63,481 bases of DNA, filler included, from Guillardia theta CCMP2712 (GCF_000315625.1; 6 parts of 6 records of this genome joined end to end with filler, not necessarily neighbours in it), one strand, 5' to 3'. Counted from the whole stretch's first letter, positions 964-28,922 are shown. Notes: generated by a model from the sequence alone, not told the origin. Numbers and translations are program-made.

Positions 964-1741
964 ATTCTGTGAAAGCGTTTAGCTGAACTTGTCGATGACC
1001 TGCAGACCTGAAGCGTCACATGCTTGCAACCTTCACCACATCTTCAGAGCTCTCCTCTGTTCTGCTCTGCCATGAACGTTCCTCTCCTCTCTCTCCTTAA
1101 GCTTCAACTCTCTCTCTCTCTCTCTCTCGATCTCGATCTCGATCTCGATCTTTCTTTTTCTTCCCCTGCCTGAGGCCCCTTGCATGTTGTACATCGACCA
1201 ACCAAAAGCTAGAACCTTGGCTCACGTCCCTTACCGTTACATGACGGTTACAATCCTGTGGATCCGAGCCTGAGGGGCCGACCGTGGCGGCACAGTGGCC
1301 GGGCCGGGCCGTGACCGTCACTGAGGCTCACTGATCCCGGCGCTGCGGCGGCGCCCCCGGTGGCCGGGCCCGGCGGGCTCAAGCTGGCCGGGCGGCGGCC
1401 GCGACCTCATCGAGTCACCGAGTCGTCTCGACCTTTCAAGTACCGTACTGTTGGAGTGCGGCAGTGCCCATGTTGACTTTTTCTGAACGATTTTGGAACT
1501 TCGGAACTTTTGCCAAAAAAATCTCAAGCAATTTCGTGGTTTTTACAGTTGTTATAGTGCAGAGCGCTGGTCACGGTACCGGTACGGCATCATGTGTTAC
1601 CGCTGATCTCCCCGAGTCCCGCCGGCCGGCCCGGGCTCCCGGCCTAGCCTGGTACCAAGGCATAAGAACAGACACTCTTAGCTTGTGTCTTGTATCTAAG
1701 AAAGACCCTCGACCCATCTTGTTAGTGTTTCATTCAACGAA

Positions 1742-3951
1742 TTATTTCATCCCATTGCCATACTCTAGACCATTTTCGAAAACTTCACCTTGTGACAAGG
1801 CATCTTTCTTCGACAGTGAGAAGCTCTTTGTGTAGAACGAGTTCCCCTCTTGAAGCTTCAACGAGTTCCTGTGGTCTCTTGAGTACGATTGAGAGAGGAT
1901 CTCTTTTCGCATTAGCTTCCTTCTCTTCTGCACGTTCCCTTCTATGAATGAGAACTTCTCATGGAAGCATCTCAAATCCGAAGAGATTCTCTCGAGATCC
2001 AGAACAATTGGTGCATTGTGCAAATTTGCCATCTCATCAATGATCTCTTCTGGACACTTCCCGCTCACGAGCTCAGTTTGATATCGGTCTGCTTTTCAGC
2101 CGAGGCGATCGCAAGTCCTTTCAAGGCCTTCATCACACTGTCAATATTGTCGCTGTTCCATCCAGCGATTCCGACCTTGCTTGCGAAATGCAGTTGAAGT
2201 TTGGTGTACCTGAACATGACCAGCCGTAGCATGCAACCGAACCCAGCCTTGGAGAGGAGGCCACTCTTGCTCGACAGACCAGCGTACTCGACAAACGCAT
2301 ACCAATCCTTCAGCTCGAAGATGACGGGAGGCATCAGCCTCATCTCGCGGAATGCTGACTGAAGCTCCTTGAAAGACATCGACTCCTGATCATGCGTTTC
2401 ATCCATGCAGTTCCCCTTAGAAACACATACAGCTTTCCACAGTTTGCCCAGCCGGACCTCCAGGTCTTCAAGGTCGACGCTGTCCAGTAGCTGTTCGACA
2501 AGAGACTTCAAGCCAAATACGCTTCTCTGGACATACATGACATTGGGGTCTTCATAGGGTCGTAGATTCACTCCAGTGTTGTTGCTCGGCGAAGAGCAAA
2601 ACTTATCCACAAGCACGCAGATCACGATGTTGACCAGAGTGAAAGTGATGATCAACTGATAGCTCACAAAGAAAATACCAACACCCGCAGGATTTCCTGT
2701 CTGTATAAACAATTGTCGAACAATATCAGACCAACCATCGCCTGTCATAAATTGCCACAAAGTGAACATTGCTCGGAAAAACGTGCCAAAGTCTTCTACA
2801 GTGTAGGAAGCAAAAAAGTTGACGCACATCATGGCGTAAATTGAGGCAATCAGAAACAACAAAAGATATGCATTGGCCATCGCTGGTATCGCTTCAAAGA
2901 TTGACTCTACAATCCTTTTCAAGCTTGGCACGCGCTTGAAAAGTCGGAAGACACGAAAGGTACGCATCAATTTCAAACTGTTTGAACCAGGAAAATTTCC
3001 AGCAGCTATCGAGAGAATTCCAAAGAAAACGACAATGAAATCAAAGTGATTCCAAGGATCCCTGAAGAAGTCTCGGAAAAGGTTTGCAAACAAGTTGATG
3101 GAGAGTTCAAAGGCAAAGATCAATGTGAAAGACATGTCACAGAAATCTAGAAAGTCCAAAAAGCTTGGAGGTAGCTGAGAGCTGATTATGTTTATCCCGA
3201 AATTAAAACAAATGAAGGCAGCAACAACAAGCTGGAACTGAGGCTTCATATAAAAGTATCTCACTTTCCACCTCAGAAAACCAAGGCGATTAACATGGCA
3301 CATTTGAGAAGCTGTTTCATACTTCAAGGCTCTTCGAAGACATTCAACCCAAAAGTCTCTCTCTTCCTTTGTCTGACATTTGAATTTGAGCGGTTGTCCT
3401 CGGAAATGACCGAACGCACTAGTAAGAAGAACAAACTCCTCATCCCCTGCCTGCAGGGCACTTACAGAATGAAGAGCTCGTCTCGATAGTGTTCTTCCTG
3501 GGAAGAGATTAGCATGTTCAGATTCAAACAATTTTGATAGGTCGTCAACATGCTCAGATTCGTGCAAGGAGGTTTGTCGTAGAAACGCATTGAACTTGTA
3601 CTTAACATCCTCGTGGGCTTGCTCAGCACAAAGCGAAGTAGCAACGCCTATGATATCCCCGTAGGACACGATCAAAGGAAGTGCTTCGTTCAATCTAGCA
3701 GAGACTTTCAAGCCTTCGCCGTTAAGCTGCACTAATCGGTGCGAGTATGAATATGTACATCTCATCCATTCCTTGCAGTGCAGTTTTAGCCATCCCTCTG
3801 TTCTGACCTCCTTTAGAGGCCTTCCATCTTCAAAGAACTGACGAGTGTTGTTCCAAGCCTCAGAGAAATGTCGCCTTGTCGATAGTAATCGTGGCGTTTC
3901 ATTCAGTTGGTGGTCAGCCTTCAACTTCCTGCAAGCATAAAAAAGTGCCAT
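1742..3951 (-). CDS. PH-domain plus single-domain (6TM) voltage-gated cation channel (Ion_trans; BacNav/CatSper/EukCat-like)
   Basis: ORF 2065-3951 has a PH signature (EGWLKL...FKCQTKEERDFWVECLRRAL), S1-S3 (FFRDPWNHFDFIVV), S4 (LMRTFRVFRLFKR), filter TLWQFMTGDGWSDI and S6 (TLVNIVICVLVDKF). ORF 1742-2068 may be a 3' exon after a GTGAG donor. Confidence 0.85.
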
Positions 3952-4319
3952 GTTCGAGAACTGACGATGCAGGCACCGCGACAGTACTTTTATGATAGCA
4001 TGGAGTTGTCAGAACCCTTGAGAAGAACTATCCAACTACACATGTCAACAAGAAAAAGGCGTCAAGGTGTCTTCTATGCTCACGCTCTTGCTGTAAAGTT
4101 TGCATCATCATCCTGCAGTCCAAGCAAAGGTAGCATCATGAATGCATTGACGTGATATCACCCATGACCCTTACAGCTTCATGATCACAATATAATGATT
4201 CTCACTCATCACATCATGGATGTCTGCAGATAAGTTCCCTTCCTATGTGAAGCATGGTCCTGCGCATCTTGCCCGGTGGTTCAACCATGCATCTCATTTG
4301 CAATGACACATGCCGTGCT

Positions 4320-5340
4320 CGATTAGGTCCTTCTCACATTCACCACCCTCCTGTATCTCCCTGTCACCACCCCCTCCCCGGCATTACTTCGAACCGTGAT
4401 CTACCCTACACCCCACCCTGGGCCTAGCCCCCACCCCTACGGTGATTTTTTGAGGCCCCAATCTCCAGGGTGGGTCCATCCACCACCCCTCCCTCCTCAT
4501 GTATAGACTTCTTTGATCCCACCACCCGGTCCTTACACATATCCCCTATCTCCCCTAGAAATTTCTATCTCCGAACCCACCCCCTGCAAACCTTTTTTCC
4601 CCGTCTTTACTACACTGCCTGAAGATCACGAAGGGCTTGAAGGAATGCCGCTACCCCCACCCCCACCCTCACCTCCACCCCCACCCCCTCCCATTTTCAC
4701 GACTGACCCCCCCTCGACTCCGAGGCTCATTTTGGGAATTTCCGAGCCTCACCCTCACCGCCCCTACCACTGTCAAGTACCCACGGGTCCTACTAGGCTG
4801 TATTCAGAAAGAGTTTTCGACCAACTGCAGGGCACTAGGCTACATATAGTACCCCCCCCCCCTAGGCCTCGAAGCAACCGTCTGCCAGGTGTCGTCCCGG
4901 TCACTACTAGCAGCAAAAAAAAGCAGCAGCTCACCACCCTACCCCATGAGGTCTCAGCCCTTCTTAGCACCGTCAAGTACGGAGTGTTCGGAGTGATGAC
5001 TCCCCTGCCCTGGCACGGGCCCGGCCAAGTTTCTGCCAGGCTGGTCAGTGACCCGGCTGTGGTCAGTGGAGTCAGAGTTTACTCTGAAAGTTGAATAAGT
5101 TACTTCAAGCCGGGCTCAAAGTTACTAAAAGTTAGGTTGAAAATCAATGTGTGACAACACTGTGACACTGTGATCGGACAGCCTGTCCGAACAAGTTTCC
5201 TGGTGAGTCCGAGTCACCGCGCGGCCCGGCCCCCGCGGCCGCCGGGGCACCCGGAGCCACGGCACTGTGGCAGGCCTGCCAGGCTTCGGCCCGTGCAGTG
5301 CGGCCCAGCGGCGGGGCCCGGGGTCCGGCGGGCCGCCATT
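4320..5340. repeat. Intergenic repetitive block: C-rich tracts followed by a CpG/palindrome-rich block
   Basis: Recurrent CCACCC/CTACCC/ACCCCC runs at 4320-4960, then dense CCGG/GGCC/CCCGGG at 5000-5340. Similar architecture recurs elsewhere in the window. Confidence 0.5.
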
Positions 5341-7313: not shown

Positions 7314-7479
7314 TCTTTGCTCAAAGTTAAGTTAAAATTCAGTACGAGATCATTTGACCATCATGAGTCAACTGAGAGTCGGAGAGCCTCCGGGCGGCCC
7401 TCGGAGACCCCGGCTGAGAGACTCGAGAGCCTCGGAGACCCAATCATGGGCCTGCCAACTGCTGTCCCCCAAACTTAAC
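7314..7479. mobile_element. Short non-autonomous interspersed element, copy 1
   Basis: Left end TCTTTGCTCAAAGTTAAGTTAAAATTCAGTACGAG and right end CCTGCCAACTGCTGTCCCCCAAACTTAAC are shared with the copy at 7666-7817; the middle differs. Confidence 0.6.
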
Positions 7480-7653: not shown

Positions 7654-7829
7654 CGTTGAACAGTCTTTACTCAAAGTTAAGTTAAAGATCAGTACGAGGA
7701 CAATCAGGAGAGACGAGGAGGCTTGACCCAGACACTGTCGCACAGGCCAAACGGCGAGAAGAGAAAAGACAGCGAGAACCAAACCCAATCCTGCCGACTG
7801 CTGTCCCCCAAACTTAACGTTGAACAGTC
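7654..7829. mobile_element. Short non-autonomous interspersed element, copy 2, with flanking direct repeat
   Basis: CGTTGAACAGTC at 7654-7665 and 7818-7829 flanks a 152-bp body with the same terminal blocks as the other copies. Confidence 0.7.
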
Positions 7830-8375: not shown

Positions 8376-11300
8376 ATGATGCTTCCTAGTCCCAGGCTTC
8401 TTCTTGCAGCCGTAGTCTTCCTGCTCTCCTTTCCATCCCCGGCCCTTTCAGTGCAATGCGGTTCCTGCAACTTCATTGTCACCTCAGGCGTCCTGACAAG
8501 GGAGGGCGACTGTCCTACCGACTGCTTGAACCTCGGGCTGACGTACATGTCGATCTCCAGCATCGTGCCAGGAACGTTCAACAACCTGACCTCGCTGGTC
8601 GGAGTCTATCTTCAATCGAACCGCTTGCAAAACATCACGTCAGAGCAACTGGCGGGGCTGCAGGGGCTCAAGTACCTGGATCTGTCTTACAACCAGATAT
8701 CGTATGTGCCGGCAGGAGCTTTGTACAACTTAGGGGGACTTGTTGGTCTTAGCTTCCAAGGAAATATGCTGGTGAACATCTCTTCGGACATGTTCTCCGA
8801 GCAACACGTTCTGATGTATCTTGATCTTTCATACAATCGCATCTCGAACATTGCTTCAGGTGCCTTCAACAGTCTTTCGTCCCTCTATTCCCTCGCCTTG
8901 AACGGAAACAGCTTGTCAAGCATATCGTCAGACACGGTCAAAGGACTAGGGAGTATCTCATATCTGACCCTGGACTCCAACAAGATCACAAGCATAGCTT
9001 CTGGAACCTTCAGCAACCAAGTCTACCTTGCTAGCCTTAGTCTAAACGGGAACAACCTCACTAGCATCTCTTATGATACCTTCAAAGGACTATCGAGACT
9101 CAGTTCACTTTACCTTGGCAACAACAGGATCTCCAGCATTGCTCCTGGAACCTTCAGCAGCCTGACGTATCTGTACACCCTCGATCTGCACGGGAACAGC
9201 CTCACTAGCATCTCTTCTGACACTTTCCAAGGACTAGCAAGACTGACATATTTGAACACATCCTTCAATCAATTCTCAAACATTGCTCCCGGGGCCTTCA
9301 GTAACCTGACGTCTCTGAACTCCCTGGACATCTCCATGAACAACCTCTCGAACATCTCTCCCCTCACCTTCGCAGGGCTCTCATCACTACAGTACCTGTT
9401 TCAGTGGAGTTGCAAGGTTTCGTCTGTAGCTCCAGGCTCCTTCGCCGGCTCTCCACTCCTGAAGATAGTCGATCTGTCGTCGAACAGACTGACCACCATC
9501 GAGGCAGGCGTCTTCAACTCTCTCAGCAGCCTTTCCTCCCTCTCCTTGGGAAGCAACCAGATCAGCTGCGTGGCTCCTGGGGCCTTCAACCCCCAGCTGC
9601 AAGCAGGTCTTCGAGTCAACATGTGGTACAACCCTCTTCCTTGCTTGGAGCCCTCGGTCGTCCCGCTCGTGACGCCTCTGATCCCTCCATGCACCGCCGA
9701 CACGCGATGCTCGATGAACGCGACAGTCAAGGCCATCCAGCTGGTCGAGCTGCTCAAGGTCATGTACGAGGCTCTAGACGTGGCCGGAGCGGGTCAGGTG
9801 TGCGTGAGAGACATCGCGGGGGCGGCGGGGAACCTGAGCTCGTACTACCTCGCTACCTCGGGCAGGGTGGAGCTATCGCAAGACTGGGTGAGCGGCTTGT
9901 TACGGTCGTTCGTGGCTGAGGCGGGGGCGGAGGGGCAAGTGACGTCGAGGAGGCTCTTGCTGGGCATTGTGGGGGGGGTGACGCCGGAGTGGAGCCCGGA
10001 AGAGAGCGTGGGCGACCTGATGCTGCGAGTGTCAGCCGTGTTGATCAGCATGGCAGACTCAGACAAGGATGGCAGGGCGGGAGGGCGGGAGCTGGAGGGG
10101 ACGTTTGGGATCCAAGGCGGACTGCTGGATGTGGTAAGGAGAGCTTGAGGGGGAGGCAGAGGACTGACGAGGAGGGGGAGGTCAGGTGATGCAGGTAGCC
10201 GCCAAGAAGAACGGGCAGCCTGTCGGGCAGGTAGGAGCGTCAGAGCTGGCGTACCTGCTGGAGTCAGCGACGGCGTACATGCGGGGCGAGAAGCTGCCGC
10301 GGGACCTGGACGGGATGACGAGGGAGATGGTGCTTGTGCTGGTGAGGCTGGCGGATGCCAACGGAGACGAGGCGATCTCGATGCAGGAGGGGAGGATGAT
10401 CGGCATACCAGGTCCAGCTCTCGCCGAGGTGAGTGAGGTGGTGGGGTAGAGGAGGGGGTCGTGAGGCCGGTTGAGCAGGTGGACGGGGACGGGAACGGCG
10501 TGGTGACCGCCGAGGAGATGATGGACGCCAAGCGACGGATGCTCAACAGCCTGGCGACGTCGTCAGGCTACGTGCACGTGCGAGACAAGGCAGCGAAGAT
10601 CTACTTGACGTCTGTGTGGACGACAGGGAACCTGACGATGCTGCTGCAGCCGTCTTGGTTCTTCCCTAGGCGGGCGGTCGATGCCCCGGCGGTGGAGCAG
10701 TGCGGGTCAAGCGGCTCTGCGGCAGGAGGGTCGACAGGCTCTGGAGCGGAGACGTGGAGCTACGGGGACCTCGGGGAGGAGATGGTTGAGCTGATAGGGC
10801 CTGGCTGCTCGTTCGCAGACTTTGTGAGGTACGGGCTCGCGTTGGGACCCTACGCAGAGCAGCAGGCGACATGCAGCTCGATACTGCCATGGACGCTTGC
10901 TCCTCTGCTCGTGACCTCGCTCGATCGGAACCTCGACGGAGGGCTGTCGATGGACGAGACGATCTGCTTGGGGAGCGCGGTCTTCCTGGACATCTCCAAG
11001 GGGTCCTGGCGGATAGAGGGGCAGATGCTGGAGGCCTATCTGCTCCGCACGGGTCAGGTGGGAGGCCCGGTAAGCAACGGGAGCGACTTCGCCTTCTTCC
11101 GGATGCTGTTCGGGGAGCGACTGGACCCGTCCTTGAACAGCTCTGCCATCTTCCCGCACATCGTGCTGCCGGACCCGAGCAGCGCTGAGCTGAGCGCGAG
11201 CTTCTTGCTGGGGCTGGGGATGCCGGGAGGGCGATACCAGGAGCTGTTCTGCGGCTCGTTGCCATGCGTCGGGAACGAGAGCCTGTCGGGGCTCAACCTC

Positions 11301-12798
11301 ACGGCGCTGCAGAGGCTGCATGCTTCAGCGGTGTCGGCCTACTGCTCGGGCAGCTGGCTCATGCAGTACAGACGCTCAGCCGGGAGCTCGTCGTGCTTCG
11401 CAAGCTTGATCGACACGCGATGGGCCGTGACTAGCGTAGCGTGCGCGTACCAGGCTGTCAACCCAGCGGACGGGAGCGTGACGGTGAGGATGACACGGGC
11501 GGACGGGTATCGGATCGAGGACGTGGTGAGGGTGTCTAGCCATCCTGGCTACGGATCTGATCCGGGGAGGTATGACGTGGCGCTGTGCGAGCTCGGGGCT
11601 GCGTCGCTAGGGAGGCCTGTGGAGCTCTACGACGGGACGATGGTGCAGGCGATGGAGTGCAGGAGCATGGAGCTCGTCGTGGGCAGCCCGTTGAGCATGA
11701 TGCCGGTCCTGTGCGATCCGAGCCCGGGCATCCTGCAGGACCTGAGGCTGTCAGACCCGTCGCGGCCCTCGTGTCCGGCTCCATGCAACCCGCCCGTCGC
11801 GATGCCCAAGATGGCGGCAGGGACAGCGATGGTGGTGCGAGACGGGAGGAGCCCGGGGAGGGAGTGGCTGTACGGGTACGTGTCGGAGTCGAGCAGCGGA
11901 GGGCAGACGTGGATGGGGGTGAGGGAGGTGCTGGAGTGGATCTTGAGCGGGGACGGGGTGGGGAGACACGGGGCGAAGGTGATGCGGGTGAGGGTGACGT
12001 CGCTGGTGCTTCCGGCGGGAGGGTCGCTGAGAGTGTCGGCGGGTCACCGGGGGGCGATGGAGGTGGTGGAGGAGCCCTGCAGGGAGGAAGTAGTCTACAC
12101 GGACGGGGGGACGGGGTCGATGAGGCTGGAGCTGCTGAGCTCGTGCGGGCTGTGTGGGAAGGTGGAGGTGAAGGTGAGAGGGGAGGAGGAGGGAGGGGCT
12201 GTAGGGCTGACCGGGTGGGAGGTGCAGGCGGAGGTGGAGGTGCTGTCTTGCAGGGAAGCTCAGCGCAGCACGGGCGTGTGTCCTGAGGGATGCGCGCAAG
12301 GATACAACAGGACAGGGACGGGGGCTGTGTGCGAGGTAGAGCTGCTGCTGGGAGGGGAGAGAGGCTGACTCGTCCTGTCAGGATCCTCAATGCAATGTAA
12401 TCATGCCGGCTAGTCGTGCTATAGAGCTCATCAAGCAGAACAAGGCGAGACGAGGTGAGAGGTCGGCAGGAGGCGACGGCAGTGGGTGACGGATGGAGCA
12501 GGCGGGGTGAGGGCGAGGGATCCGCGGTATCACTCGTGGGTGTGTCTCAAGGACTGGGACGAGGAGGAGATGCTGTCTTGCGGGATCGACCGCAACGAGT
12601 GGGCGTGCTTCAGGTGGGCAAGGGAGAGGGAGGGCGGGAAGGAGGGAGGGGGAGGAGAGGGGAGGAGGCAGAGGGATGGAGGGGCAGCAGGGGGAAGGGG
12701 CTGACAGAGAGTTGGGGCATGGCAGGTACCTGAAGGAGAGCATGGAGCTGGAGTTTTACGGGCTGAACAGTCGGGTTCGTCTAGTACAGGAGGGATGA
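8376..12798 (+). CDS. Secreted LRR / EF-hand / inactive trypsin-like / CUB-like protein, copy A (15 LRR units)
   Basis: Signal peptide, Cys cap, 24-aa LRRs, NPLPC cap, EF-like loops (DANGDEAISMQE, DGDGNGVVTAEE, DRNLDGGLSMDE) and trypsin-fold motifs. Predicted exons 8376-10133, 10186-10428, 10479-12335 (probable extra intron 12174-12227), 12382-12454, 12502-12613 and 12727-12798. Confidence 0.85.
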
Positions 12799-13231
12799 GG
12801 GCAGTAGGAGGGGCAGTCCCCTCATGGTTGCTGGCGGAGGAGGAGGATTGATACATCTATTTAACATCCTACTATTTCAAGTGACGCGTCAAAACTGTTG
12901 CAATGATACAACCTCGTACACAAGTTTCTCGCAAGGGAGTAACTGCTGAATGGCACATGGCACCTAGGTGGACCAGACGATCATGTCCTGACATGCAACA
13001 TCTTTCAAGAACAACCTTGTGCAGCACCAATGATGGGTCTGTGAAATTTCTCAACATTCATCCTCGCGATCGAGGACAGGGAAGAAAGAAATGCTGCTGT
13101 CTTCACTCCAACGCCCATGAATCTGTACCAGTGTTCCCTAAGCTGCGAAGCAAGCAATCGATTACACTCTGAGACAAGAGCCTTGCATCAGGTCTTGTTC
13201 TCTTGGAAGTGAATGCCCTTGACCTGATTCT

Positions 13232-14650
13232 CTATTTACATGGGAACAACAACACTTTGTTTGAATACTGATCCTTCAAGCAAACAGTCTCGGCAACCAT
13301 TGACCCCCAGCTGTATTTGTGCAGTTTGTCCTTTGCTGGGGCTCCTGTCTCAGTCAGTCTAGGGCATTCACTCTTGACATGTCCCACTTTCTTGCAATAA
13401 AAGCACTTTGTTTTCTTCTTGTCAAACTTGTTCGCTCGAGACCCTGCAGCGGTCAAGGACCGCACCTTCGTGGGAGGTGACTTCACTAGAAACACCTTCA
13501 AGTCTGTTTCATCAGCTTGCGTCTCGTCTTCGTCCAAGTACTCCGCCCAAGTATACAAGTCTGAAAGGTGTTTGCCGAACGCCTCCATCGAACAGTACTC
13601 ATCCACCGTACCTTCACGTTCCAGCGCAGCCCTCAACCTCTCCTTCATACACACTCGCACAGCTTGACGATAGATCCCAGCAACGAAGATTTTCTCCAAG
13701 AAACCTGCAATGACTATCTGCTTGCATAGAAGCTTGTAGCAACCGATGATGTGATGTGCATATCTCTTGTACCTCGTGATATACGACGACATGTTCTCCC
13801 CTGAGCTCTGTCTGATCTCCTTCAGTTCCTCCACCAGCCTCTCAACCTTGCTTTCCGGCAACCAGTGCTTTGCCATGAGCTCTTTGAAGCTCTTCCAGTC
13901 CCCACCCCCGGGCAAGCACATGCTCTTGTCCCTGTCCGGTAACGACTCGTACCAGTCGCGCGTATCCCCTTCCAAGAGCGTCGAGGCTACAGCACACCAG
14001 GTGTGGCCGGGGACGTCTTGACAGCGGCACTGCAGCTCTACCTCGCACAACCATGTCACGACCGACCTGCACACGCTGAAGTCTCCGTTGAATCGACGCG
14101 CATGCTCGGAATGGAACTGACCACCTCTCCTCGGTGCCACCATCCTCCCTTCTGCATTGAGCTCAGTTTCCTTCAGGTGCTTCGCGTCTCGCGCTGGCTG
14201 TGATGTGCCAATGTCTGTCCTCTGCGAACGCAGTGAAGCCATCTCCTCCTGAAGCTCCTCCTGCACACGCTTCATCTTCGCAATCTCTCCACGCCATGCA
14301 TCCGTCGAACGATGTAACCCTTCTTGCCGCTCCTGCAACTCCCGGCAAGTAGCTCGAAGAAGCATGTTCTCCTCCTCTAGTTGACCATAGCTTCTCTGTG
14401 AGTGTGACGCCTGTTGCTCTTCATCTGTTCTCAGTAGGCCGGCTTTTCTATCCCATGTAAACCCATCCAGTGATGGGAGAGAATCGTCTGATGCAGATTC
14501 GGGCCCACAAGATCCCAGCGCATCGATCTTACATGGAAGCGAATCGATCCCAGCCTCGTCGTGTCGTTCCTTCATGGTTGATCGTTGAGGAGAGCCGATC
14601 GCAGTCGTCTCTGTCATCTCCTTCACCATCTGATTCTCGCAACCTAGCAT
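13232..14650 (-). mobile_element. gag: Stand-alone LTR-retrotransposon (Ty3/gypsy-like) Gag ORF
   Basis: N-terminal coiled coil, capsid region (FNGD...WL...LLEGDTRDWYESL...WKSFKELMAKHW), MHR-like LKEIRQSSGENMSSYITRY and zinc knuckle CFYCKKVGHVKSEC (CX2CX4HX4C). No protease, RT, integrase or LTRs seen in the spacer. Confidence 0.88.
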
Positions 14651-14867
14651 GCACGTGAAGTTGAAAACCTTTACTGACAGTTGAATTATTGACGATTCTT
14701 GAACTTATACTTTATGCACATTCGAAGGACGTGAGTCTTCCTGCTGTCCTGCCCTCCGACCGAAGAGACTCAGTGGATCCGATCGGATCGGCACGGCGGC
14801 CGGGACTCACCGAGACCTGAGCACTCAGCCCTATCATGCACATCCAGGCTACTCCCTCCTACTGCCC

Positions 14868-17800
14868 TCATCCCTCCTGTACTAGACGAACCCGACTGTT
14901 CAGCCCGTAAAACTCCAGCTCCATGCTCTCCTTCAGGTACCTGCCATGCCCCAACTCTCTGTCAGCCCCTTCCCCCTGCTGCCCCTCCATCCCTCTGCCT
15001 CCTCCCCTCCCTCCTCCGCGTCGCCCTCCCCCTCCCTTGCCCACCTGAAGCACGCCCACTCGTTGCGGTCGATCCCGCAAGACAGCATCTCCTCCTCGTC
15101 CCAGTCCTTGAGACACACCCACGAGTGATACCGCGGATCCCTCGCCCTCACCCCGCCTGCTCCATCCGTCACCCACTGCCGTCGCCTCCTGCCGACCTCT
15201 CACCTCGTCTCGCCTTGTTCTGCTTGATGAGCTCTATAGCACGACTAGCCGGCATGATTACATTGCATTGAGGATCCTGACAGGACGAGTCAGCCTCTCT
15301 CCCCTCCCAGCAGCAGCTCTACCTCGCACACAGCCCCCGTCCCTGTCCTGTTGTATCCTTGCGCGCATCCCTCAGGACACACGCCCGTGCTGCGCTGAGC
15401 TTCCCTGCAAGACAGCACCTCCACCTCCGCCTGCACCTCCCACCCGGTCAGCCCTACAGCCCCTCCCTCCTCCTCCCCTCTCACCTTCACCTCCACCTTC
15501 CCACACAGCCCGCACGAGCTCAGCAGCTCCAGCCTCATCGACCCCGTCCCCCCGTCCGTGTAGACTACTTCCTCCCTGCAGGGCTCCTCCACCACCTCCA
15601 TCGCCCCCCGGTGACCCGCCGACACTCTCAGCGACCCTCCCGCCGGAAGCACCAGCGACGTCACCCTCACCCGCATCACCTTCGCCCCGTGTCTCCCCAC
15701 CCCGTCCCCGCTCAAGATCCACTCCAGCACCTCCCTCACCCCCATCCACGTCTGCCCTCCGCTGCTCGACTCCGACACGTACCCGTACAGCCACTCCCTC
15801 CCCGGGCTCCTCCCGTCTCGCACCACCATCGCTGTCCCTGCCGCCATCTTGGGCATCGCGACGGGCGGGTTGCATGGAGCCGGACACGAGGGCCGCGACG
15901 GGTCTGACAGCCTCAGGTCCTGCAGGATGCCCGGGCTCGGATCGCACAGGACCGGCATCATGCTCAGCGGGCTGCCCACGACGAGCTCCATGCTCCTGCA
16001 CTCCATCGCCTGCACCATCGTCCCGTCGTAGAGCTCCACAGGCCTCCCTAGCGACGCAGCCCCGAGCTCGCACAGCGCCACGTCATACCTCCCCGGATCA
16101 GACCCGTAGCCAGGATGGCTAGACACCCTCACCACGTCCTCGATCCGATACCCGTCCGCCCGTGTCATCCTCACCGTCACGCTCCCGTCCGCTGGGTTGA
16201 CAGCCTGGTACGCGCACGCTACGCTAGTCACGGCCCATCGCGTGTCGATCAAGCTTGCGAAGCACGACGAGCTCCCGGCTGAGCGTCTGTACTGCATGAG
16301 CCAGCTGCCCGAGCAGTAGGCCGACACCGCTGAAGCATGCAGCCTCTGCAGCGCCGTGAGGTTGAGCCCCGACAGGCTCTCGTTCCCGACGCATGGCAAC
16401 GAGCCGCAGAACAGCTCCTGGTATCGCCCTCCCGGCATCCCCAGCCCCAGCAAGAAGCTCGCGCTCAGCTCAGCGCTGCTCGGGTCCGGCAGCACGATGT
16501 GCGGGAAGACGGCAGAGCTGTTCAAGGACGGGTCCAGTCGCTCCCCGAACAGCATCCGGAAGAAGGCGAAGTCGCTCCCGTTGCTTACCGGGCCTCCCAC
16601 CTGACCCGTGCGGAGCAGATAGGCCTCCAGCATCTGCCCCTCTATCCGCCAGGACCCCTTGGAGATGTCCAGGAAGACCGCGCTCCCCAAGCAGATCGTC
16701 TCGTCCATCGACAGCCCTCCGTCGAGGTTCCGATCGAGCGAGGTGACGAGCAGAGGAGCAAGCGTCCATGGCAGTATCGAGCTGCATGTCGCCTGCTGCT
16801 CTGCGTAGGGTCCCAACGCGAGCCCGTACCTCACAAAGTCTGCGAACGAGCAGCCAGGCCCTATCAGCTCAACCATCTCCTCCCCGAGGTCCCCGTAGCT
16901 CCACGTCTCCGCTCCAGAGCCTGTCGACCCTCCTGCCGCAGAGCCGCTTGACCCGCACTGCTCCACCGCCGGGGCATCGACCGCCCGCCTAGGGAAGAAC
17001 CAAGACGGCTGCAGCAGCATCGTCAGGTTCCCTGTCGTCCACACAGACGTCAAGTAGATCTTCGCTGCCTTGTCTCGCACGTGCACGTAGCCTGACGACG
17101 TCGCCAGGCTGTTGAGCATCCGTCGCTTGGCGTCCATCATCTCCTCGGCGGTCACCACGCCGTTCCCGTCCCCGTCCACCTGCTCAACCGGCCTCACGAC
17201 CCCCTCCTCTACCCCACCACCTCACTCACCTCGGCGAGAGCTGGACCTGGTATGCCGATCATCCTCCCCTCCTGCATCGAGATCGCCTCGTCTCCGTTGG
17301 CATCCGCCAGCCTCACCAGCACAAGCACCATCTCCCTCGTCATCCCGTCCAGGTCCCGCGGCAGCTTCTCGCCCCGCATGTACGCCGTCGCTGACTCCAG
17401 CAGGTACGCCAGCTCTGACGCTCCTACCTGCCCGACAGGCTGCCCGTTCTTCTTGGCGGCTACCTGCATCACCTGCCCTCCCCCTCCTCGTCAGTCCTCT
17501 GCCTCCCCCTCAAGCTCTCCTTACCACATCCAGCAGTTCGCCTTGGATCCCAAACGTCCCCTCCAGCTCCAGCCCTCCCGCCCCGCCATCCTTGTCTGAG
17601 TCTGCCATGCTGATCAACACGGCTGACACTCGCAGCATCAGGTCGCCCACGCTCTCTTCCGGGCTCCACTCCGGCGTCACCCCCCCCACAATGCCCAGCA
17701 AGAGCCTCCTCGACGTCACTTGCCCCTCCGCCCCCGCCTCAGCCACGAACGACCGTAACAAGCCGCTCACCCAGTCTTGCGATAGCTCCACCCTGCCCGA

Positions 17801-19642
17801 GGTAGCGAGGTAGTAGGAGCTCAGGTTCCCCGCTGCCCCCGCGATGTCTCTCACGCACACCTGACCCGCTCCGGCCACGTCTAGAGCCTCGTACATGACC
17901 TTGAGCAGCTCGACCAGCTGGATGGCCTTGACTGTCGTGTTCATCGAGCATGGCGTGTTTGCAGTGCATGGAGGGATCAGAGGCGTCACGAGCGGGACGA
18001 CCGAGGGCTCCAAGCAAGGAAGAGGGTTGTACCACATGTTGACTCGAAGACCTGCTTGCAGCTGGGGGTTGAAGGCCCCAGGAGCCACGCAGCTGATCTG
18101 GTTGCTTGCCAACGAGAGGGAGGAAAGGCTGCTGAGAGAGTTGAAGACGCCTGCCTCGATGGTGGTCAGTCTGTTCGATGACAGATCGACTATCTTCAGG
18201 AGTGGAGAGCCGGCGAAGGAGCCTGGAGCTACAGACGAAACATTGCAACTCCACTGAAACAGGTACTGTAGTGATGAGAGCCCTGCGAAGGTGAGGGGAG
18301 AGATGCTCGAGAGGTTGTTCATGGAGATATCTAGATCCAAAAGTAGTGTTAGACTACTGAAGGCCCCGGGAGCAATGTTTGAGATGTTGCTTGAGGCAAA
18401 ATACAGGCTTCCCAGATTCTTCAGTCCATAAAATGCATCTACTGTGATGGTGGAAATGTTGTTGCCATGGATGTCAAGACCACGCAGTAATGTCAGGCTG
18501 CTGAAGGTTCCTGGAGGTATGCCGGAGATCTGGTTGTAGCCAACACTCAGATATTGGAGGTTCCCGACTCCGGCAAAGGTATCAGGAGAGATGCTAGTGA
18601 GGCTGTTCCCATCCAGATAGAGGGTGTACAGATACGTCAGGCTGCTGAAGGTTCCAGGAGCAATGCTGGAGATCCTGTTGTTGCCAAGGTAAAGTAAACC
18701 GAGTCTTCCTAGTCCTTTGAAGGTGTCTGACGAGATGCTTGAGATTCTGTTCCCCCATAGATCGAGTTCGTAGAGTGACGACAGGTTGTTGAAGGTCCCC
18801 GGAGGTATGCTGGAGATCTGGTTGTAGCCAAGATAAAGCGTTCCTAATTGTCCAAGCCCTTTGAAGGTGTCTGACGAGATGCTTGAGATGCTGTTCCCCC
18901 ATAGATCGAGGGTTTTCAGGTACGTCAGGTTGCTGAAAGCCCCGGGAGCTATGTTCACAATTTTGCTGTTCCACAGAAGAAGGGTTTGGAGTGAAATTGG
19001 CCCAGAAGAAAACTCAACAGTGATATTAGGCAAGTTGTTCCCATGCAGGTAGAGACTGTTTAGGCTTGTCATGTCTTTGAAAGACCCAGAAGCTATTTTG
19101 GAGATGCGATTGTATGAAAGATCAAGGTACATCAGGTTCTGCAGTCCCACATACATATCCGAAGAGATGTTCACCAGCATGTTGCTACGGATGTACAGAT
19201 TAACAAGTGAGCTTAACTTGCTGAAAGCTCCTGCCGGCACATACGATATCTGGTTGTAAGACAGATCCAGGTACTTGAGCCCCTGCAGCCCCGCCAGTTG
19301 CTCTGACGTGATGTTTTGCAAGCGGTTCGATTGAAGATAGACTCCGACGAGCGAGGTCAGGTTGTTGAACGTCCCTGGCACGATGCTGGAGATGCTGTTG
19401 TACCCCAGGTAGAGGTACTGCAAGCTCGAGAGCCCAGTGAATGCGTTGACAGATATCGAGGTGATTGACATGTACGTCAGCCCGAGGTTCAAGCAGTCGG
19501 TAGGACAGTCGCCCTCCCTTGTCAGGACGCCTGAGGTGACGATGAAGTTGCAGGACCCGCATTGCACTGAAAGGGCCGGGGATGGAAAGGAGAGCAGGAA
19601 GGCTACGGCTGCAAGAAGAAGCCTGGGGCCAGGAAGCATCAT
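14868..19642 (-). CDS. Secreted LRR / EF-hand / inactive trypsin-like / CUB-like protein, copy B (20 LRR units)
   Basis: Inverted paralog of copy A with the same exon structure. Start taken at ATGATG 19642; the first-exon ORF is 120 aa (5 x 24) longer than in copy A. Confidence 0.85.
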
Positions 19643-20159
19643 CAGTTTGAACGGCGGAATATCTTTGACAGATATCGCAACGCTGGAGGGACCTAGATCA
19701 GGAACACGGTGAGTGAACATTATTTACACGTATCAAGGCAAGCTTCTCTTGGCTTCTGCGATGTTGCACTTATACCATCTCATGGGTTCTGCTCCCACTG
19801 CGTTTATCAAAATCCTACTCACAACCTTCAGCTCCGACCAATGGTGACAGCCGAAGTCAGTCTTGCGTGCTCTTCCTGCTACCTTATCTCCATCACATCA
19901 ACTTGGCTTTTCTCATTCTTCTTCAGCTCTCCTTCTCTCTCTGCCCTCAACTGGCGTCCTTTGTTCATACCGCCATGACTAGGTTTTGCCCAATTCCGGC
20001 GGGAACCTGAGGGGAATGTCCTTAGGGGCAACCTACCGGTGGTTTACCGCGAGATAGGGGGGGTTACGTGCGAGTGATCACTCTATGGAATTGTACGCCG
20101 GTACTTTTCACGCTCTGAGCCAGTAAACTGACCACCCCTACCCCCTTCTGGTATTTAAT

Positions 20160-21933: not shown

Positions 21934-22163
21934 TGAGTTCAGTTCTTACTACGACTGCCAACTCGAACAAGTCATTTTACACGGCCGCCCGGCGGATCCA
22001 GGCTTGTACCTGAATGTTTACTCATCTTGCGGGAACCCAATTTGCTACACCAGTGGCGCCGGGATACCACTGGCACGTGCCGCCTGAAACCGCCGGGCCG
22101 GGCCGGGGCAGTGACAACGGTGAAAGTACCGGCGGGCCCGATGGCAACTTTGAGTTAAAAATC

Positions 22164-22308
22164 TTTACTCAAAGTTAACTTAAAGATCAGTACGAGGATC
22201 GGACAACCAGGAGAGTCGAGGAGGCCCTTGACCCTCGAGAAACTATGATGAACCAAGTTTGTCAAACTCAGATTGGCCGTACTGGTTTTTAACTTAACTT
22301 TGAGTAAA
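22164..22308. mobile_element. MITE-like arrangement of the same element family (31-bp inverted ends)
   Basis: 22164-22194 and 22278-22308 are reverse complements at 28/31 positions. The left part matches 7665-7729. Confidence 0.65.
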
Positions 22309-28197: not shown

Positions 28198-28922
28198 CCT
28201 GATCGAAGTGTCCATTACTACCCTAGACACCCCGATCGATTTGCCCTAATCCCTCGTTCTGTTCCTTTCTTTACCTCTGTCTCCCATACCTGCATAGCCC
28301 TCGCTCCCTCCTTCCTTCCCTTGCCCTCCCTCCCATCCCCGTCTCCTTCTCCCCCTAACCCCGCTCCTCCTGCTCCTCCTGCTCCTCCTGCTCCTCCTGC
28401 TCCTGCTCCTGCTCCTGCTCCTCCTCCTGCTCCTCCTCCTGCTCCTGCTCCTCCTGCTCCCCCTTCCTCCTCCTCCTGCTCCTCCTCCTGCTCCTCCTCC
28501 TGCTCCTCCTCCTCTTTGTTATCGCCCTCCTCCTCCTCCATGACCTCAATCCAATCCTTGTGCCTTCGTCTGCGTGCTATGTCCTCCTCCTCTTCCATCC
28601 TCCCTCTCCCCGTCTCAACCCTTCCTCCCCTCACGCTTTTTCGTAGCCTCCTGAGCTGTGGTGGGACGGAGCTTACCCAGACATGGTGGACAAGCTCAAA
28701 CAGAAAGTTGTCAACTGGTGTACAGACTATATCACCTCTCCTTTGCTCACAATCAACATCTCATCTTGCAATCTATCTCTTCTCCCATCTCACAATTCAA
28801 TATCTCCCTCTCTCCTCTCCTAATAACTCCCTCCCGTGAGCTTACGCTCCTTGCAAGGTTCTATGTCATTCCAAGAACGCATGTAAGGTTGAAGAACAGA
28901 TACAACAGGTTCTATAGGTGAT

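Follow-up and report, generated by a model that had tools for sequence, protein, structure and literature searches.

We have analysed a window of 63,481 nucleotides from Guillardia theta CCMP2712 (GCF_000315625.1), i.e., the whole stretch of DNA under study, which joins six parts of the genome with filler. Judged from the ORF list, the Pfam matches and the homologues P0001 and P0040, the open reading frame (ORF) at 13232-14650 on the minus strand is the gag of a Ty3/gypsy retrotransposon of the chromovirus type. The copy in the window is probably an internally deleted, 3'-truncated and LTR-less chromovirus-type fragment in which gag is still open. Most probably, then, this is an ordinary relic of a transposon rather than a capsid gene adopted by the host. 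The sequence-only reading that drew attention to this ORF had offered two options, a co-opted capsid of the Arc, PNMA or Fv1 type, or the scar of an element that could have seeded the inverted duplication around the ORF. An element scar as such fits better. Against the co-opted capsid stand an attached integrase remnant, the transposon relatives, the lack of any relative above 50% identity among 1.84 billion cluster representatives, and the near-identical arms of the inverted duplication.

The ORF encodes 472 aa, starts with ATG, has zero internal stops and ends with the stop codon at 13232-13234. Together with the repeat coordinates, the ORF list confirms the earlier claim of an intact 472-aa ORF filling most of a 2041-bp spacer. 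The modules that had been noticed in it, a coiled coil, a capsid, an MHR-like segment and a CCHC knuckle, are likewise backed by the Pfam matches, by a helix in the AlphaFold2 model and by the pattern Q281-x3-E285-x7-R293. In Pfam, Retrotrans_gag (PF03732) matches aa 221-300 with E=8.7e-11 and 42.4 bits against a cut-off of 24.1. The zf-CCHC match at aa 415-430 reaches 20.5 bits in the whole protein, below the cut-off of 20.8, and rises to 25.1 bits against the same cut-off when the C-terminal piece is scanned alone. The knuckle pattern is C-x2-C-x4-H-x4-C (aa 416-429). This zinc knuckle (nucleocapsid) lies at 13361-13408 on the minus strand with KFDKKK ahead of it, and is assigned from the Pfam piece scan and from nucleotide identity to the contigs L005-L007. 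The MHR-like motif has been read straight from the Gag sequence (13772-13810), and in a family alignment of 38 members its Q281 reaches a conservation of at least 90%.

The N-terminal coiled-coil helix is placed at about aa 77-148 (14207-14422, minus strand) by the AlphaFold2 model built with an alignment and by alignment A3, in which the conserved motif S-[YF]-x-[DQ]-[LI]-x-EEN-x-x-LR-x-x-C is common to the relatives P0001 and P0040. Within this region, aa 88-148 form a long helix in the model, at pLDDT 95-97. Since the coiled coil is common to the transposon relatives, it is a family trait and not an addition specific to domestication. The capsid (CA) region, about aa 175-380 (13511-14128, minus strand), is delimited by pLDDT, Foldseek and Pfam, and includes the Retrotrans_gag match (13751-13990) as well as the MHR-like motif. 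With the 38-sequence alignment, pLDDT exceeds 90 across most of aa 175-380 and reaches 74 for the whole model; this run replaced one on Gag as a single sequence, which gave an unusable pLDDT of 43.6. The top Foldseek matches in the PDB are the capsids of PNMA2 (8rb3), Arc (6gse), dArc1 (6s7y, 6tap), BLV, HIV-1 and Copia, with probabilities up to 0.99 (0.97-0.99 for PNMA2, Arc and dArc1) and E values never under 0.03. These matches lend the predicted two-lobed capsid fold of the window Gag qualitative support, statistically unproven as it is. Both the profile comparison and the structure comparison that had been proposed together with the capsid claim have thereby been run, with Retrotrans_gag found at the E value given above and the PNMA2 and Arc capsids leading Foldseek at E of at least 0.03. 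A PDB sequence search with the Gag gave coiled-coil and knuckle noise only and was set aside, and a PHROGs search with it gave no match. The GC3 of gag is 0.61, inside the range of 0.50-0.84 spanned by the host ORFs, and is therefore uninformative on its residence time.

Relatives of this Gag are few. We have searched 1.84 billion cluster representatives exhaustively with HMMER, the protein sets of G. theta and Hanusia phi among them, and have obtained 50 matches at E<=1e-3 and two at E<=1e-30; no relative among these representatives exceeds 50% identity, the maximum being 47%. The best homologues are P0001 (E=4.6e-82) and P0040 (E=3.2e-32). A word-index search with the Gag gave one match, a first metagenome scan with the single protein as query gave no relative, and a second scan with alignment A3 as query gave two more copies (L008 and L009) of the type found on contig L002, and nothing else. 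The named relatives are hypothetical proteins of G. theta CCMP2712 and transcripts of Hanusia phi at ~25-34% identity. Overall, the relatives group with the cryptophytes G. theta and Hanusia phi and with unassigned metagenome contigs. As judged by these sequence relationships, the window lineage is a chromovirus-type Ty3/gypsy lineage found, among named sources, only in cryptophyte algae. One paper (PMC12220804) notes nested retrotransposons in the genomes of cryptophytes, among them a Copia element that lies within a polinton-like virus of G. theta. A literature search found no published description of this Gag or of its element family.

All the Gag relatives with enough flanking DNA are transposons. 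The question had been raised whether other copies have pol or LTRs, and the relatives seen in context do: L002 and L007-L009 have gag and pol, and L001 and L003 have LTRs. P0040, with 27-29% identity, 476 aa and the same coiled-coil, capsid and knuckle layout, sits on L002; the 1075-aa ORF behind this gag is separate from it and holds domains for protease, RT, RNase H and integrase. Gag and pol are also present on L008 and L009, L007 carries the gag C-terminus with the knuckle and then pol, and in P0087 gag and pol are fused and a chromodomain is included. The closest relative, P0001 at 44-47% identity, is found on L001, where an LTR with a CA end and a primer-binding site (PBS) of the TGGTAGCG type come before it and the start of pol follows; the LTR of L001 is 94% identical to a G. 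theta LTR. The gag of L001 has an in-frame TAG between KFD and the CCHC knuckle (1537-1640), beyond which the knuckle is conserved, and which could mark either a broken copy or a read-through design.

In G. theta itself, L003 (JH993054.1) holds at 9347-12217 a compact element of the order LTR, gag, integrase/chromodomain, LTR, without protease (PR), RT and RNase H. Its LTRs of ~180-215 bp run from TG to CA, share a 130-nt core that is 100% identical, and are followed by a PBS. The gag of this element (GUITHDRAFT_116005) is decayed, and a 384-aa integrase-SH3-chromodomain ORF at 10804-11958 is open. Near the element, at 15.5-17.3 kb, lies a fragment of an autonomous element of the L002 type, with 84-91% nucleotide identity to L002. 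The stretch from KFDKKK to the CCHC knuckle of the window copy (13361-13433) has 78-82% nucleotide identity to L005 2061-2133, L006 1066-1138 and L007 440-508. This conservation is unusually strong for gag, as the gags of the same elements are otherwise hardly alignable as DNA.

The claim of a stand-alone Gag does not hold cleanly, since tblastn shows that the ORF is integrase-derived at its end, as is the sequence past its stop. The first remnant of the integrase core (13214-13288, minus strand) is in the gag frame and crosses the gag stop, with 44-55% identity to L002 pol aa 870-889 and to the L003 integrase. Here L002 pol aa 870-889 aligns to 13273-13214 and continues across the stop, the window residues being DQYSNKVLLFPCK, the stop and then RIRSRA against DQFSNRVFLYPCKKSITSKG in L002. 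The second remnant (13023-13187, minus strand) lies in a different frame, is bounded by stops and is matched by the same two queries: L002 pol aa 905-956 aligns to 13187-13023 with 31% identity, and the L003 integrase matches there with 38%. Both remnants together give a summed E of 1e-5 with the L002 pol and of 2e-7 with the G. theta L003 integrase. In the second remnant SDNG has changed to SECN and the HPQ motif has been lost. Between them, the two remnants show a stop codon, a frame change and the loss of catalytic motifs. Overall, the ORF is integrase-derived over its final 14-20 codons, and the homology extends ~250 bp past the gag stop. For the rest of pol, tblastn with the L002 pol found no other match anywhere in the window. 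The Pfam rve profile was not detected on the remnant, and the integrase call therefore relies on family-specific tblastn. The integrase ancestry of the remnant is solid, as two queries independent of each other hit it, strand and order are right, and it lies immediately behind gag.

The tail of the ORF agrees with this picture. In the alignment, the gag of P0040 ends 10 residues past the knuckle, and the window ORF goes on for 32 residues further. The Gag tail at aa 437-472 has pLDDT below 50 in the AlphaFold2 model and is predicted to be disordered. As a decayed integrase core is fused to the C-terminus of the ORF and also continues beyond the stop, the gene is best regarded as a deletion derivative of a gag-pol element.

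We have also looked at what the copy is missing. The spacer of the inverted duplication (12813-14853, with no strand assigned) is unique: the repeat search found no second copy of it within the window. Behind gag, about 420 bp had been described as free of a protease motif. This is indeed the case, as the 419 bp after the gag stop contain no D[ST]G motif in any of the three minus-strand frames, all of which are rich in stops. Of these, the 210 bp that separate the last integrase homology from the left arm (12813-13022, minus strand) are unassigned and have stops in all frames, and tblastn with the L003 integrase ORF is silent past 13023; this segment lacks the remaining integrase sequence, the chromodomain and a 3' LTR. 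Ahead of gag, the 203 bp between the right arm and the ATG (14651-14853, minus strand) are without a recognisable LTR or PBS. The absence of an LTR pair, also claimed earlier, is borne out by local alignment, in which the 203-bp and ~210-bp flanks align with a score of 15 against a shuffle mean of 16.4, i.e., no better than shuffled sequence. In addition, the repeat search found no direct repeat inside the spacer, and no TG..CA terminal repeat pair was seen there. The alignment of the 203 bp with the LTR and PBS of L001, L002 and L003 is equivocal. These three contigs have a TGGTA(G)CG... PBS right after an LTR ending in CA, and nothing like it occurs within the 203 bp upstream of the window gag. 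The short upstream similarities CTTCACGTGCATG, GGTTTTCA and TGATAGG were considered as LTR or PBS traces and dropped, being at chance level. Neither tRNA genes nor Rfam families were found in the window. Having no LTRs, no primer-binding site and no pol, the window copy is unable to transpose.

Based on the above analyses, a course of events can be proposed. The ancestor would have been a Ty3/gypsy (Metaviridae) LTR retrotransposon of the chromovirus type from the cryptophyte lineage. An internal deletion would have taken out the natural stop of gag, the protease, the reverse transcriptase, the RNase H as well as the N-terminal portion of the integrase. Through this deletion, gag would have become fused, in frame at its end, to the central part of the integrase core. 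What was left of the integrase would have decayed afterwards, and the remaining integrase, the chromodomain and both LTRs would have been lost from the window copy. If transcribed, the gene would yield a normal retrotransposon Gag, with the coiled coil probably serving oligomerisation, the capsid shell assembly and the CCHC knuckle RNA binding. This design is that of retrotransposon work, and nothing here leads to a host function. The order of these events is inferred, as is the view that the ORF is open through the youth of the fragment, or of the last gene conversion or duplication, and not through selection.

How young the fragment may be is indicated by the inverted duplication. Its arms (9324-12660 and 14998-18334) are 99% complementary in the repeat search, an inner piece (12636-12812 and 14854-15030) leaves exactly 2041 nt between them, and outer, more diverged parts extend to 8376 and 19642. 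The left arm (8376-12812, plus strand) carries an LRR_8 ORF at 8376-10148 and then a 635-aa ORF at 10461-12368; the right arm (14854-19720, minus strand) carries an LRR_8 ORF at 17510-19720 (736 aa) and then a 635-aa ORF at 15290-17197. In both arms the gene points toward the spacer. We have counted 4 substitutions between them in 10183-12626 (~2.4 kb, 0.16%) and 0 in 12657-12812, and the lower identity of the inner piece reflects an indel cluster in a GGAGGG low-complexity run. The LRR ORFs differ between the arms (590 vs 736 aa), the right one having a 144-bp tandem array; the zones of difference in the LRR repeats lie at 9200-9330 and 18413-18988 of the window. Near-identical 3' parts (~2.6 kb) and unequal LRR numbers suggest a recent duplication, or concerted evolution with a change of repeat number.

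The 635-aa ORF that follows the LRR block is GC-rich and has weak Trypsin (E=2.4e-5) and EF-hand matches in Pfam. A word-index search restricted to 350-1100 aa found no homologue of it and thereby did not locate the orthologous G. theta locus. The ORF may represent only the C-terminus of an LRR protein that is much longer. Many long antisense ORFs around the two 635-aa ORFs are by-products of the high GC content. Between the Gag and the LRR genes, position is the sole link, and no functional tie is seen.

Several observations concern the window beyond the duplication. An ion-channel ORF at 2065-3951 on the minus strand shares 78% identity with a protein of Hanusia phi and 96% with a metagenome protein, and the window is co-linear at 1684-4409 with contig L010 (ENA PRJEB17505) at 94.6% nucleotide identity. 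These matches and the named relatives of the Gag place the host among the cryptophyte algae, near Guillardia, and not in human. The ORF has 734 aa in L010 vs 628 aa in the window, diverging past residue 620, and a frameshift, an indel or an intron may lie at the 3' end of the window gene. A dispersed repeat of ~35-73 nt with 86-94% identity occurs at 7314-7348, 7664-7729 and 22162-22234, and inverted at 22278-22308; the copies at 22162-22308 form an inverted pair ~150 bp across, which is MITE-like. This repeat was not found in the two G. theta loci compared. Long CTC/CCT-rich low-complexity tracts lie at 610-735 and 28311-28557, at both ends of the piece.

With respect to selection on gag, the arms are informative in one direction. 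If the fragment is as young as the arm divergence implies, only ~1-2 changes are expected in 1.4 kb, so that the intact ORF needs no selection. On the other hand, gene conversion could keep the arms identical and thereby mask the true age of the spacer. The integrase bears on the same question. In the integrase segment, L002 and L003 are 88% identical, yet their gags are only ~25% identical, and the window remnant is only 31-58% identical to L002 or L003. As the integrase decayed extensively while 472 gag codons stayed open, this asymmetry also fits selection on gag. The simplest reading is that the integrase decay came earlier, during propagation as a gag-dependent non-autonomous element, and host-level selection is an alternative source of the asymmetry. 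With the nearest relative of the Gag at 44-47% identity, synonymous sites are saturated. Nothing among the 1.84 billion representatives hints at an orthologue conserved as a host gene, and the best match (47%) is itself a transposon copy.

A young host co-option, where the alga would keep the Gag as a capsid-forming or RNA-binding protein, e.g., a restriction factor or an RNA carrier, is the first alternative to be weighed, and we consider it unlikely. The intact 472-codon ORF beside a heavily decayed integrase remnant speaks for it, and so do the preservation of every Gag module with a confident predicted capsid fold and the absence of pol and LTRs, as in Arc, PNMA and Fv1. In a variant of this explanation, the Gag and the two convergent LRR genes might share their regulation. 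However, an orthologue above 50% identity is found nowhere, not even in the protein sets of G. theta and Hanusia phi, and the exact Gag protein is absent from a collection of 15 billion sequences, so that no called gene or transcript is on record. In addition, the end of the ORF, ~30 residues derived from the junction and the integrase and predicted to be disordered, looks accidental, and the near-identical arms permit a very recent origin, which makes the open ORF uninformative. A very young, lineage-restricted domestication, e.g., of a Gag interfering with related active chromoviruses and placed between convergent, concertedly evolving LRR genes, seems to us quite improbable.

An explanation of another kind takes the fragment as a marker of how the palindrome arose: a retrotransposon cDNA or a resident element would have been captured or cut at a break or template switch, and the spacer would be the junction filler. 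This agrees with a doubly truncated fragment that fills most of the spacer, with transposon sequence ~200 bp from each arm, and with arms that are near-identical right to the spacer edge. The 203-bp and 210-bp flanks may nevertheless be ordinary intergenic DNA, and an insertion into a pre-existing spacer followed by deletions fits equally well. Such an origin is compatible with the transposon relic and adds only history to it, and we rate it as very unlikely.

A still-mobile, non-autonomous, gag-only element that uses pol in trans from autonomous relatives would also account for an intact gag beside a decayed integrase, by selection for a working Gag. Actually, the element at L003 9347-12217, with its 100% identical LTR cores, shows such a design. 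The window copy itself argues against mobility, with flanks that align like shuffles instead of an LTR pair, no recognisable PBS, no second copy in the window and no close copy in any database searched; we therefore regard this explanation as highly improbable. That the inverted duplication and spacer were mis-joined in assembly, with gag coming from elsewhere, is hardly credible: arms only 0.16% apart are a structure that assemblers can create or collapse, but the arms differ in LRR repeat number (590 vs 736 aa) and by scattered real substitutions, the spacer is unique and asymmetric, and the gag and integrase findings are independent of the palindrome.

The main value of the truncated transposon copy, as we read it, is one of correction: the apparent stand-alone Gag is a truncated chromovirus-type copy. 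The analysis also documents a sparsely sampled Ty3/gypsy lineage, with the Guillardia/Hanusia clade as its only named sources and with an unusual N-terminal coiled coil. In addition, the transposon fragment in the spacer offers a dated landmark for the origin of the near-perfect inverted LRR pair. If domestication were true, this would be the first documented Gag co-option in a cryptophyte, and if expression and conservation held, it would be a Gag co-option outside animals, plants and fungi.

Finally, the window copy can be compared with known systems. Arc/dArc1, PNMA, PEG10/RTL and Fv1 are syntenic across species, under purifying selection and expressed. Like them, the window gag is open, without pol and without LTRs, but it has an integrase remnant attached, and, unlike for Arc, PNMA, PEG10 and Fv1, the search for conserved orthologues is empty; its predicted capsid fold has the PNMA2 and Arc capsids as best PDB matches in Foldseek. 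The nearest systems are the Ty3/gypsy chromoviruses of the Guillardia clade (L002, L008 and L009, which are autonomous, as well as L001 and L003). Like the L002-type elements, the window Gag has a coiled coil, a Retrotrans_gag capsid and KFDKKK with a CCHC knuckle, and the integrase core is homologous. Unlike them, the window copy is without PR, RT, RNase H, most of the integrase, the chromodomain, the PBS and the LTRs, and its ORF is longer by ~30 residues derived from the junction and the integrase. Like the L003 element of G. theta, it has lost PR, RT and RNase H between gag and integrase and has retained gag. The L003 element has LTRs and an open integrase with a decayed gag, whereas the window copy shows the reverse. 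In the L003 deletion the break comes ahead of the knuckle, and the sequence picks up again at the integrase HHCC domain; in the window copy the break comes only past the knuckle, and the sequence picks up again midway through the integrase core. Since these junctions differ, the two deletions are independent; the PR-RT-RNaseH block has thus been deleted more than once in the clade, a recurrent loss in this cryptophyte Ty3/gypsy lineage.
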